DNA of 64,000 nucleotides from Macrostomum lignano (lineage: Eukaryota). The stretch is from positions 244,482 through 308,481 of the forward strand of contig NIVC01000555.1 of assembly GCA_002269645.1 (NCBI GenBank), in the 5' to 3' direction. Of this stretch, positions 15,502 through 19,625 are shown one piece after another; position 1 is the first letter of the stretch; each line of letters opens with the position of its first letter. The notes beneath the pieces are model-generated. The model was not told where the DNA came from. It ran no database searches and saw only the letters and a list, made by a program, of their open reading frames with translations. Position numbers and translations under genes: made by a program.

Positions 15502-16472
15502 TCAGGACGAATCGTCTCGTGACCTGAGTCTGGCCAGCTCCATCTTAAGACTCTTCATCTCTTCGTCTTTTTCTCGCTCCTTGGTTATGATTAGCTCGCG
15601 TTCTGCCGCCAGTTGGATGTTTTCCAGCCTGAGCTGGTCAATCTCCTGGTCTCTCTTGTGCACCATGCTGTAAACTTGGAGCACGTGTTGCAGTGAGTCG
15701 ATGAGCTCCTCGTTGAGCGAGATCGGTCCCAGGCGCGCCTGCCGCTCCAGGGCTTCGAGTGCGCGGTGGCAGGTCTGGAGAGCGGCAGCAGCCTCACTAA
15801 GCACCCCCGCTTTCTTTGTCAGCTCGCTGGAGCTCAGTTTGGTTACGTAAGCCGTCCGAATGCTGTAACTCCCAAGGCAGTAGCTCCACCAGCTGCAGCA
15901 GCAATGAAACTGCAGGAGAGGCCAAGGATGGCAGCAACTCCAGACAATGCCGTGGCTAGGCCGTAGCCCCACCGTTTCCAATTCGTAGCTTTTTTGTCGG
16001 ACTCGCTTGACTCCTTCTCGACCTCGGCGATTGTGCTAGAGAAAAACTCCCGTAGCTTCTCCATGCTAACTAGGAACTTCTTCATCTCCTCCAGGTGCTG
16101 CTTCGAGATGGCAATAGAGTTGTCCAGCTGAGTCTGAATTTCACTGACGTCGGCTTCCGTGATCTTGCCAGATTTGATCATCCGCGTCAGGCACTTCTCA
16201 ACAAACTGATGCTGTTCCTTTAGCGGAACTCCAGTTCGGCTTAGCTCGTCGATTTTCGTCTTGCATTCTTTGAGCTTCTCCTTGCCTAGTTGGAAACTAA
16301 TCGAATCGAGCTCCGTTATTTGCTCGCATCGGACGTGAAGGTCCTGTAGGCCTTCTTTTATCGTCTCCATCTGCCTGACAGCTTCGGCGACCTTGTGAGT
16401 GGCGTCCAGCACTATGCTCCAGCATGCCAGATTTTTTGCCATCTCAGCCGATGCCTCACTTTGATTGGACAT
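15502..16472 (-). CDS. Intronless coiled-coil protein with a hydrophobic hairpin (about 323 aa once one frameshift near 15855-15865 is repaired); paralogue of 17688-19625
   Basis: Overlapping ORFs 16472-15843 and 15981-15502 join with one added base (…GVTAFG/TAYVTKL…). The product has a helical N-terminus, WKRWGYGLATALSGVAAILGLSCSFIAAAAGGATALGVTAF, and a heptad-rich C-terminus. Confidence 0.7.
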
Positions 16473-17687
16473 TGTCGCTTGATTGTTTCAAGCCTAGGTG
16501 TTGCAAGTTCAACTTACAGAGTACACCCGGATATCAATTTATTTTACTTAATCTGTTCTGTAACTTTAAAATTGCTGCAATAGACAATATATACGCTCGT
16601 ATCAAATTAAATTAACTCCGCTGAAGGAAAGAAAACTATTTTCTGTACATTTAAGATAAGCGTAATCTAGTTAAAGATCTGATAAACAATATAGTCTGAA
16701 TTCATTTTCAGTCGCGCGCTGTTCTGGTATTTATGCATTAGGCTTGTAAACTGTGGGCTGGGCATTATACTCCGCACGGACTCTTCTACAAGCTAAGAAC
16801 AGTGCATTTTGTGTTGTGTTTGCACTCAGTACTGGGTGCAGGGGCGCCAGTAAAGACGCGGCTCATCACGGTTGTTGACTTCAGAAGTCACACGGCGGAA
16901 CTGCAGAGATTCGACCAAGACAATTCGTCCTGCTCTAGCAACCTTGCAAAAAACACCACGGTTTCCATCGTAACTGGGCTAGCGGCTTGCGCTTGGGCTA
17001 TGGTAAAAGCATATTGCGAAGCTCACGAGTGTCTATAGTCCTTGTCAGTGTGTAATAGCTCGTATATTTATGCATTGTAATACATGTACGATCCAGCTCC
17101 AGCGTGCATTAAACGCTAAAAGCCCGCTTAAACGGCTCGTGAGCGCGTATTGGCAAGAAGTAATTTAACACAATATACATGTATATCGTGATTACTCATT
17201 TAATTCGGCAGTCATGTGCTACACAATCTAACATTGTCAGAACTTAAAGAGATGTTGTCACGATGAAGGTACTTTTTCGAAATTGACATTAGGAACTTCA
17301 TACCAATGTATCCAGTTAACGGTATTCTTTATGTAGCTAATACAGAAATTACATGTTAGATTTATGAGACAAAAAGCATTAGCAGCGCGGCATATGCATG
17401 ATGAAAAAACTTGTTCAATGTGTGCTTTTCCAGAAAAAGCCTGCGGAATTGCCGCGGAAATTTCACCGCGACTCCTTTCTGCGGTTTTTCCATGGAATTG
17501 CCGAGGAAAATCCGCTAAAATAAGTAACTAAATTTTTACAGACAGGTTGCTTCATCGGAATGCCTACACGATTTCAAAGTTTTTAACTAATAAATCTACA
17601 TAATTTTTAATTATAAATAAGTATAAATAAGCTAAGTTAAAAAATTGTTACTATTACTGAAGCTACTAACTGCTGACGTTTGATGAC

Positions 17688-19625
17688 ATGTCAGACAATC
17701 CAAAAAAGTTGAAAAATCTCAAGAAGTGTTTGCGCGCTGTGCATAACGAAAACCGCGAGATCTCCAGAGCAACTGCGACTGTAAGTGAAACCAAGAAGTT
17801 TATTGATGAATTTTATCAGTCGCTGAAGCTACTTGCAAAAGAAGAATCTGGTACACCAAGAGATGGCAACTATGAGGAACTACTGCTTCATCTGCAGAAC
17901 GGTGTGAAGGAAATTAAGATTATTTCTTCCAGTATGAAAGCTATGAAGCAACATCACGTGCCAATTGAATCCGACCTCAAACTCACCGTATTTTCTAAAA
18001 GAGATTCACGAAAATCCGTCCAAACAAAGAAGACTACTGCGGCAGTTATTAGCAACAAACTGCAGGAGTCGAAAATTCTTGTCGAAGGTATCGCGGACTC
18101 AATGAGGTTTTTCCAGCAGCAGTTAGAAAGAGCAGACAAAGTGCTTGAGCAGCTCATCAAAGCGCTCCAAGATCAGGAAGACGTCCTAGAAAATCGTGCG
18201 AGTTGGCGTCGATGGTTGGGATATGGGGGCGCAGCAGCACTCGCAGCCTTTACCATTGGCTACATCTACTTTGCTTGGCCTTTGAGTTTTTCAACTTTTT
18301 GGTCGAGCAGCTCCAATCCAACAGTCGCTACCTCTTCGTCTGCGCCTGTAGAAAAATTAATAAATTGCGCTGCCACATCCGTTGATACTGCTGTAGCTTC
18401 TCAGCCAGTTGAGACTGCTCTGGCAGTTTCTGCTGCCGATAATGCTGCTGTAGCTTTAGCTTCTCAGCCAGTTGAGACTGCTCTGGCAGTTTCTGCTGCC
18501 GATAATGCTGCTGTAGCTTTAGCTTCTCAGCCAGTTGAGACTGCTCTGGCAGTTTCTGCTGCCGATAATGCTGCTGTAGCTTTAGCTTCTCAGCCAGTTG
18601 AGACTGCTCTGGCAGTTTCTGCTGCCGATAATGCTGCTGTAGCTTTAGCTTCTCAGCCAGTTGAGACTGCTCTGGCTTTTTCAGCTGCCGATAATGCTGC
18701 TGTAGCTTTAGCTTCTCAGCCAGTTGAGACTGCTCTGGCAGTTTCTGCTGCCGATAATGCTGCTGTAGCTTTAGCTTCTCAGCCAGTTGAGACTGCTCTG
18801 GCAGTTTCTGCTGCCGATAATGCTGCTGTAGCTTTAGCTTCTCAGCCAGTTGAGACTGCTCTGACAGTTTCTGCAGCCGCTGTTGTTGGAACTGCTTCTG
18901 TTGTGACGACTACAATAATGCCAGCTGCAGCCGGAATCGCAGCCGTCGTGGGTCTTTCGTGGTATACATACAAAGAAGTTGGCCAGCTAGTGAAAGCGGC
19001 GCAGGAAATTCAGAAAGTTAAAGCAAAACTTGTCTCCTCCAAGAAAAAATTAAGAGCTCAGCTTGAAAATTTTCAGGAGATGTCATGTATGAATATTGAA
19101 AGTGTAGCCAAAAGTCTTGAAGTAGACCTTGGACTTTGTGATGAGCAAAAGCTTCAGGACCAGCTCCAGAAACAAGTGGAGGAACTCCAAGCGGCCCAGA
19201 ATGATACTACTCAGAAGCAGGTGGTCCAGAATGAGGCAGCTGAGAAGCTAACAGTACAGCTCCAGGCCATCCAGAAACAAGTGGAAGAACTCAAAGCTGT
19301 CCAGAATGAAACTACTCAGAAGCTGGTGGCCCAGAATGAGGGAGCTCAGAAGTTAGCAGTACAGCTCCAGGCCATCCAGAAACAAGTGGAAGAGCTCCAG
19401 GCGTCCCAGAATGAAGCTACGCAGCAACAAGCGGCCGAGCTTCAGGTGATTAAAATCAATATGGCCTATCTGGAGGCGGCCGTGGACCGCACGGACGCAG
19501 GTTCCGAGCTCAGTGAACCATCAAACAGGAATGGTATTCCGCTAGAGAAGAAACGAAATATTATGCCGCCCCCAGGTATTAACGAAAGCAACGATCATAA
19601 TGGCTACGAGAAAATTGCTGAGTAA
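17688..19625 (+). CDS. Intronless 645-aa coiled-coil protein with two hydrophobic segments separated by a 21-aa tandem repeat
   Basis: Intact ORF. Hydrophobic segment 1 is WRRWLGYGGAAALAAFTIGYIYFAW and segment 2 is AAGIAAVVGLSWYTY. The C-terminal coiled coil contains three copies of a 35-aa (105-nt) unit starting at 19167, 19272 and 19377. Confidence 0.85.
   Translation: MSDNPKKLKNLKKCLRAVHNENREISRATATVSETKKFIDEFYQSLKLLAKEESGTPRDGNYEELLLHLQNGVKEIKIISSSMKAMKQHHVPIESDLKLTVFSKRDSRKSVQTKKTTAAVISNKLQESKILVEGIADSMRFFQQQLERADKVLEQLIKALQDQEDVLENRASWRRWLGYGGAAALAAFTIGYIYFAWPLSFSTFWSSSSNPTVATSSSAPVEKLINCAATSVDTAVASQPVETALAVSAADNAAVALASQPVETALAVSAADNAAVALASQPVETALAVSAADNAAVALASQPVETALAVSAADNAAVALASQPVETALAFSAADNAAVALASQPVETALAVSAADNAAVALASQPVETALAVSAADNAAVALASQPVETALTVSAAAVVGTASVVTTTIMPAAAGIAAVVGLSWYTYKEVGQLVKAAQEIQKVKAKLVSSKKKLRAQLENFQEMSCMNIESVAKSLEVDLGLCDEQKLQDQLQKQVEELQAAQNDTTQKQVVQNEAAEKLTVQLQAIQKQVEELKAVQNETTQKLVAQNEGAQKLAVQLQAIQKQVEELQASQNEATQQQAAELQVIKINMAYLEAAVDRTDAGSELSEPSNRNGIPLEKKRNIMPPPGINESNDHNGYEKIAE
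18396..18878 (+). repeat. Coding 63-bp VNTR (ASQPVETALAVSAADNAAVAL, 7 full copies plus 1 partial)
   Basis: Near-identical 63-nt units starting at 18396 and recurring every 63 nt up to 18837. Confidence 0.95.

Follow-up and report, generated by a model that had tools for sequence, protein, structure and literature searches.

The final 64 kb of Macrostomum lignano contig NIVC01000555.1 (308,481 bp; GCA_002269645.1), referred to here as the window and numbered from its first base, holds two divergent genes, A and B, which are a real, transcribed and lineage-restricted pair. Judged from their sequences, there is about an even chance that their products are two distantly related membrane proteins of a resident, two-pass (hairpin) type and not secreted toxins. 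The start codons lie head-to-head on opposite strands (A at 16472, minus; B at 17688, plus), and gene B was placed by exact look-up at 262169-264106 of the contig. Window 9-28 kb has two sister loci of 93-98% identity, one on contig NIVC01000230.1 (L001) and one on the window's own contig (L002, its first 14 kb in reverse). A first-pass annotation of this DNA had described intronless divergent genes around a shared region of ~1.2 kb; the strands and a 1,215-bp spacer agree with this, but A is not a single open frame in the window. The elements of the pair are as follows.

15502-16472, minus strand: gene A whole, start at 16472, broken by one frame change in the window copy.
15843-16472, minus strand: gene A 5' open reading frame (ORF), 209 amino acids (aa; P0001), with a premature stop; NCBI annotates a 209-aa product.
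15502-15870, minus strand: gene A 3' part in a second frame, a ~112-aa C-terminal helical, coiled-coil-prone domain and the true stop.
15850-15865: gene A frame-change site, from a three-copy DNA alignment (971 nt in the window, 972 nt in the intact L002 copy).
15945-15995, minus strand: gene A motif KKATNWKRWGYGLATAL, where the helical domain meets the hydrophobic segment.
15841-15971, minus strand: gene A hydrophobic segment, 44 aa (168-211 in the intact protein), uncharged and rich in Gly/Ala/Ser, with a mean Kyte-Doolittle value of 1.31.
16473-17687: shared spacer between the A and B start codons, presumed bidirectional promoter, 1,215 bp.
17688-19625, plus strand: gene B, intact ORF of 645 aa (P0003), annotated by NCBI as a single-exon 645-aa product.
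18192-18242, plus strand: gene B motif, sequence NRASWRRWLGYGGAAAL.
18213-18314, plus strand: gene B hydrophobic segment 1, residues 176-209, 34 aa, uncharged.
18390-18879, plus strand: gene B in-frame tandem array, 7.8 x 63 nt, with the 21-aa unit ASQPVETALAVSAADNAAVAL.
18855-18971, plus strand: gene B hydrophobic segment 2, residues 390-428, 39 aa, uncharged, mean Kyte-Doolittle 1.34.
18972-19457, plus strand: gene B C-terminal long helices, coiled-coil-prone, Gln/Glu/Lys-rich.

The 5' ORF of gene A spans the helical N-domain, the motif and the greater part of the hydrophobic segment and is identical to residues 1-205 of the 323-aa protein encoded by the intact L002 copy (P0006, BOX15_Mlig021359g2), and the 3' part is collinear with residues 207-323 of that copy. 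The window pieces of A were searched separately and unmended, and P0006 was used for all whole-protein analyses. Gene models of M. lignano come from transcript assembly guided by RNA sequencing and carry ~5 introns per gene on average (PMC5730564); since A and B are both listed in that annotation, their loci are transcribed. The G+C content of the A/B region is the same as that of its surroundings.

The searches strongly confirm the earlier statement that neither gene could be assigned to a named family, and, as far as sequence comparison reaches, the family appears to be restricted to M. lignano or close relatives. Pfam returned sub-threshold noise only for the A pieces, intact A and B (an ATG17-like match at E = 0.005 against a 43-bit cut-off, PspA and MscS_C), NCBIfam gave SMC-type coiled-coil noise only for A and B, and phmmer found no match below E = 1 to either protein among PDB sequences. 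SLATT, an NCBIfam candidate at E = 6.1, was rejected as noise. Word-index searches of 5.8 billion clusters (queries: the 209-aa 5' ORF of A, full-length B and the N-terminal 221 aa of B) recovered M. lignano copies only, all annotated as "hypothetical protein BOX15_Mlig...", and when the first 209 residues of A were compared exhaustively with 1.84 billion representatives using phmmer, its own sister copy alone matched. Foldseek likewise gave no match at E <= 0.001 (PDB for A and B, BFVD for B). Rows naming Vipp1/PspA, BAR, chemoreceptor, TTYH and microtubule-inner proteins were rejected as leads because they are generic long-helix matches from poor models.

Both proteins share a layout of ~170 helical N-terminal residues, a short motif, an uncharged Gly/Ala-rich segment and long C-terminal helices. 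Their N-termini are hydrophilic (on the Kyte-Doolittle scale the first 25 residues average 0.08 in A and -1.29 in B), so neither appears to carry a classical signal peptide. The uncharged runs further along the chains, of 44 aa in A and of 34 and 39 aa in B, are long enough for membrane helices. Immediately ahead of hydrophobic segment 1, each protein has basic residues (KK..WKR in A, R..WRR in B), and the 20 residues after the last one contain three K/R in A and five in B. The loop between the two segments of B (210-389, 180 residues), most of which is formed by eight copies of a 21-aa acidic Ala/Ser/Val-rich unit, holds a single K/R against 17 D/E. Under the positive-inside rule, by which the basic flanks of membrane segments tend to stay in the cytosol, this charge pattern suggests a two-pass topology with the N-domain and the C-terminal helices cytosolic. 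The hydrophobic hairpin of the first-pass annotation thus stands insofar as both proteins contain Gly/Ala-rich uncharged runs, but in B its halves are 180 residues apart, around the tandem array.

In the arrangement that we favour, segment 1 would act as a signal-anchor and segment 2 would return the chain; as there is no signal peptide ahead of segment 1, this would leave the N-terminal three-helix bundle and the C-terminal long helix or helices both in the cytosol. The W-[KR]-R-W-(x)-GYG motif would then sit at the cytosolic membrane interface, and the far side of the membrane would show a tight turn in A and the acidic, Ala/Ser/Val-rich loop of variable repeats in B. The hydrophobic segment of A contains small-xxx-small chains (e.g., A180-G184-S188-A192-G196), a pattern that typically mediates close helix packing. 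Such Gly/Ala/Ser faces, together with the long C-terminal helices, could assemble the proteins into a homo- or hetero-oligomer serving as a membrane-attached scaffold, and expression of the pair is probably co-regulated from the shared 1.2-kb spacer. All of this, from topology and oligomerisation to co-regulation and the role as a scaffold, is inferred for A and B.

AlphaFold2 models, made without an alignment, were of low confidence, with a predicted local distance difference test score (pLDDT) of 51.7 and a predicted template modelling score (pTM) of 0.32 for A, and 59.3 and 0.43 for B. Both proteins were predicted to be almost wholly helical, in line with the helical N-terminal half proposed earlier. 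The N-domain helices were placed at 2-54, 63-100 and 106-154 in A, the last running on into the hydrophobic run, and at 5-52, 60-106 and 115-205 in B (pLDDT 70-83); the C-terminal helix of A was predicted at 255-322, with residues 281-320 reaching pLDDT 90-96. A second in-frame repeat lies in the C-terminal part of B at 19165-19424 (2.5 x 105 nt; 35 aa, or five heptads). Long helices are predicted where the first-pass annotation saw a long coiled coil, but a crude heptad score reached barely the 95th percentile of shuffles, and because it failed to separate the C-domains from shuffled sequence, we do not regard coiled coils as demonstrated.

The motif W-[KR]-R-W-(x)-GYG is the clearest feature common to the two genes. 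The forms quoted in the first-pass annotation are present verbatim in both, and the longer pattern W[KR]RW.{0,1}GYG.A.AL directly precedes the first hydrophobic segment of each protein. In a six-frame scan of the 64-kb window, L001 and L002, the pattern W.[KR]W.{0,2}G.G was confined to the A and B genes. Single-sequence hhalign aligned A 58-179 with B 67-188 over 122 ungapped columns (P = 0.0083, reported probability 4.8%), taking in a shared (G/H)VP turn as well as the motif, and the low-confidence models place three long N-terminal helices at matching positions in the two proteins. In contrast, BLASTP of A against B gave nothing significant (E 0.1 and 5.4), and in 1,000 shuffles neither the N-domains alone (z = 1.4-1.5) nor the C-domains alone (z = -0.4) stood out. 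The score rose to z ~7 once the motif and the first hydrophobic segment were included, a value that is inflated because whole-sequence shuffling destroys local composition. The earlier description of the genes as paralogous is thus weakly supported, by the motif, the layout and the hhalign result but not by BLASTP or the shuffle scores of the separate domains. From the sequence alignment, the predicted helix plan common to both and the adjacency of the genes, an old inverted duplication is the likeliest origin, and it is plausible that A and B are distant paralogues.

The sister loci allow the constraint on each gene to be compared with that on its surroundings. The order metallo-beta-lactamase-fold gene, A, B is kept in three of three copies; the first of these neighbours (Lactamase_B, Pfam E = 9e-16) lies at 9548-10063 (plus strand) in the window, at 17684-19603 in L001 and at 1-216 in L002. 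Across the three copies of A there are two substitutions in 972 nt, both synonymous and none non-synonymous, the copies being otherwise 99.8% identical. Adjoining non-coding DNA has diverged by 1.3% 3' of A, by 2.9% 3' of B and by 3.9-5.6% (vs L002) in the spacer, which is the most diverged part of the duplicated block. Since A shows only synonymous changes between flanks of this divergence, its protein is conserved well beyond its surroundings. The window spacer also lacks a ~270-nt segment (site 17336-17358; 271-nt probe including a few flanking bases) that is identical in both sisters (L002 9405-9675, L001 8883-9153) and occurs nowhere else in the window.

L001 gene A carries its own one-base length change, near 10478 in a run of A, at a site different from that of the window copy, and gene B of L001 is frame-broken as well. 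The assembly (Mlig_3_7) was produced from PacBio reads with Canu and polished with Illumina reads, and it contains 180 Mb of duplicated blocks that are at least 95% identical (PMC5730564). As the changes in A are isolated, fall at different sites and occur in a PacBio assembly of a redundant genome, they could well have been introduced during assembly and not mark real pseudogenes.

Gene B has followed a different course, with seven non-synonymous and two synonymous differences between the window and L002 (pN/pS ~1.1, from small numbers) and repeat-unit counts of 8, 8 and 6 in the three copies (6 in L001). The word "intronless" in the first-pass annotation is true of the ORFs, but the NCBI model of the L002 sister of B (P0004, 499 aa, 10001-11941) skips 441 nt. 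This corresponds to exactly seven 63-nt units, in a genomic ORF that is open throughout (646 aa), and it seems more likely that transcript assembly collapsed the repeats than that the skipped stretch is an intron. At the level of the contig, positions 1-14060 are an inverted copy, 93-98% identical, of ~254,900-267,600 (window 10.5-23.1 kb), ~250 kb away, which is either an inverted segmental duplication or an assembly join of homeologous sequence.

Several points weigh against resident membrane proteins as the reading of the pair. The topology was derived from hydrophobicity and charge alone, and the structure models have the low confidence given above. Soluble heads of ClyA-family toxins also hold hydrophobic stretches of 40-60 residues, and for this reason hydrophobicity alone cannot separate a membrane protein from a toxin. 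For B, a pN/pS of ~1 fits weak constraint or an arms race and not a housekeeping scaffold, and "scaffold" is itself a generic role. Finally, no expression data were found for the gene ids Mlig021359, Mlig020711 and Mlig025775 in full texts or in the supplements of two M. lignano papers. If A and B are nonetheless resident membrane proteins, they would add one more lineage-restricted family of flatworm membrane proteins and would provide an example of orphan, single-exon, repeat-expanding genes arising and being kept in a neopolyploid genome. The M. lignano pair would be a tractable target, because RNA interference and transgenesis exist for this species.

A first alternative, which we consider unlikely, is that A and B are recently arisen coding sequence, specific to the lineage and with little or no function, that is decaying in a redundant neopolyploid genome, the frame changes being real lesions. 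Such decay would be consistent with the independent frame changes (two of the three copies of A, one of the three of B), with the pN/pS of ~1 and variable repeat number of B and with the failure to find a homologue outside M. lignano. Against this, the coding sequence of A is ~5-25 times less diverged than its flanks, with both of its substitutions synonymous, and intact copies of both genes persist. The gene models of A and B derive from transcripts, and single-base length errors are likely artefacts in a PacBio assembly with such extensive, at least 95% identical duplicated blocks (180 Mb; PMC5730564).

Equally unlikely in our view is the proposal of the first-pass annotation that A and B form a two-component membrane-attack effector. 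On this reading they would be a binary alpha-helical pore-forming or membrane-permeabilising pair resembling ClyA, Hbl, Nhe, AhlB and YaxAB or the intracellular apolipoproteins L, with the Gly/Ala-rich hairpin concealed inside a soluble bundle of helices up to the moment of insertion into a target membrane. By analogy, the order of elements matches that of the toxins (long helices, a mid-chain hydrophobic hairpin of 40 residues and returning long helices), A at 323 aa is near them in size, and the adjacency of two divergent partners resembles that of binary systems. The small-xxx-small chains in the hairpin and the fast evolution of B could be read in the same way. A mid-chain hydrophobic hairpin flanked by predicted long helices is indeed present in A (168-211), whereas the halves in B are separated by the 180 acidic repeat residues and have positive-inside flanks, an arrangement that a compact toxin head would not easily accommodate. 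The split hairpin of B and the charge pattern speak for a constitutive membrane protein.

The searches do not favour a toxin either. No family profile of the ClyA, Hbl, Nhe, AhlB, Xax/Yax or ApoL type matched A (pieces or intact copy) or B in Pfam or NCBIfam at reporting limits of E <= 1 or E <= 10, and no PDB chain of these toxins matched either protein at E <= 10. Neither protein has a signal peptide, and the immune context claimed for the pair is not established. Comparison of the AlphaFold models with ClyA-type folds by Foldseek, which the first-pass annotation had put forward as a check, gave nothing at E <= 0.001. Among the best 50 Foldseek matches of B, the AhlB pre-pore (6h2f) had the top TM-scores (TMq 0.30-0.34, TMt 0.41-0.45, probability 0.77); however, these matches had E-values of 0.36-0.52 and TM-scores below 0.5, came from a model of pLDDT 59 and ranked 30 and 39, behind unrelated long-helix proteins, and the A model had no AhlB-like match. 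The AhlB match from this model is accordingly treated as a lead and not as evidence. Because the AlphaFold models (pLDDT 52 and 59) are too poor to refute a ClyA-like fold, the membrane-attack proposal is unsupported rather than disproved. Were the pair to permeabilise membranes it would matter much more, and nothing found here makes that likely.

The strongest form of this idea, in which A and B would be the first animal-encoded binary alpha-helical pore formers of a ClyA/AhlB-like or APOL-like kind, diverged beyond sequence recognition, seems to us improbable. It would further require intracellular deployment or unconventional release, given the missing signal peptide, and would take the repeat loop and the changes in B as marks of an arms race. 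To our knowledge, ClyA-type helical pore formers are not established in animals.

Known systems with comparable layouts differ from the pair in several respects. Toxins of the ClyA superfamily (ClyA/HlyE, Hbl, Nhe, AhlB/SmhB, YaxAB/XaxAB) have 300-400 residues and a hairpin of ~40 residues, with their components encoded by neighbouring genes, and like A and B they are all-helical with a mid-chain hydrophobic hairpin between long helices. In contrast to them, A and B are eukaryotic, lack a secretion signal, have the charge pattern of resident membrane proteins and show no sequence or profile similarity, and B differs additionally in the 180-residue acidic repeat loop that splits its hydrophobic halves. 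In apolipoproteins L, a family of helical proteins of animals, a hydrophobic hairpin is combined with a leucine-zipper-like C-terminal helix, and some members are intracellular and have no signal peptide, but no Pfam ApoL match was obtained for A (reporting limit E <= 10) or B (E <= 1). Hairpin layouts also occur in mitofusins (HR1, two transmembrane (TM) segments, HR2), atlastins (three-helix bundle, TM hairpin, C-terminal helix) and MCU (coiled coil, two TM segments, coiled coil), which share with the predicted topology of A and B the succession of cytosolic helical bundle, two-pass hairpin and cytosolic long helix. A and B differ from these families in lacking a GTPase or other catalytic domain and a pore-loop signature, and they show no sequence similarity to any of them; the likeness is an analogy of architecture only.

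That a mobile element or an endogenous virus brought in the intronless pair as cargo is very improbable. In favour of it, the genes are single-exon in a genome averaging ~5 introns per gene (PMC5730564), a piggyBac-type transposase fragment (C-terminal end of PF13843, E = 5.8e-06) lies at 13777-14235 (plus strand), 1.3 kb past the 3' end of A, and a 24-nt inverted match flanks the pair (15367-15390 / 19787-19810, 110-185 nt beyond the stop codons). Against it, the inverted match is AT-rich and only 83% complementary over its 24 bases, as could arise by chance in 11 kb; neither structure nor sequence searches gave a viral match; the G+C content of the candidate cargo equals that of its surroundings; and the duplication takes in the entire 13-20 kb block, with the metallo-beta-lactamase-fold neighbour, as ordinary syntenic DNA. 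The 24-nt match was the sole candidate for terminal inverted repeats around the pair and was rejected as such, being probably due to chance or to similar 3'-end signals.

Downstream of gene B, the window contains two sets of ORFs with leucine-rich repeats (LRRs) and a transmembrane helix (LRR-TM).

24296-29340, minus strand: LRR-TM ORF set 1, with LRRs, an LRR-CT cysteine motif, one membrane helix and a cytoplasmic tail of ~230 residues.
34528-38174, minus strand: LRR-TM ORF set 2, ~95% similar to set 1 and with the same elements.

Each set is split over several frames, and set 1 lies outside called genes, none being called over 19.6-29.6 kb (the gene look-up reached 29.6 kb). The cytoplasmic domain begins "...LPYDAMLWASDRDQD", and the YDA... 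stretch at the start of this tail looks Box-1-like by eye. No TIR domain was found in the LRR-TM ORFs by Pfam at E <= 10 or by phmmer against the PDB with the 200-aa cytoplasmic part. A published survey counted zero Toll-like receptors (TLRs) in M. lignano and none in other flatworms (PMC8609888). The first-pass annotation had placed the pair directly beside a TLR cluster; with fragmented LRR-TM ORFs, no TIR found and that survey count (PMC8609888), this claim is not upheld. The LRR neighbours are thus not demonstrable TLRs, which fits the published finding of no TLRs in flatworms and removes a false context from the pair. A very divergent TIR domain in the LRR-TM tail, if true, would be notable, as flatworms are reported to lack TLRs.

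The remainder of the window is rich in long simple and minisatellite arrays (1089-4559, 10147-11279, 41981-45715 and 53050-55662), among them (GTCT)263 at 43736-44787 and a 12-nt CT-rich array at 10851-11279. Overlapping long pseudo-ORFs at 43432-45093 and GC-skew spikes at 10-12 kb and 44-46 kb are due to these arrays. Near the end of the window, two ORFs encode cadherin domains (60345-63393, plus strand; Pfam Cadherin E = 1e-23 and 4.5e-15) and probably represent exons of a single cadherin gene that runs off the end of the contig.

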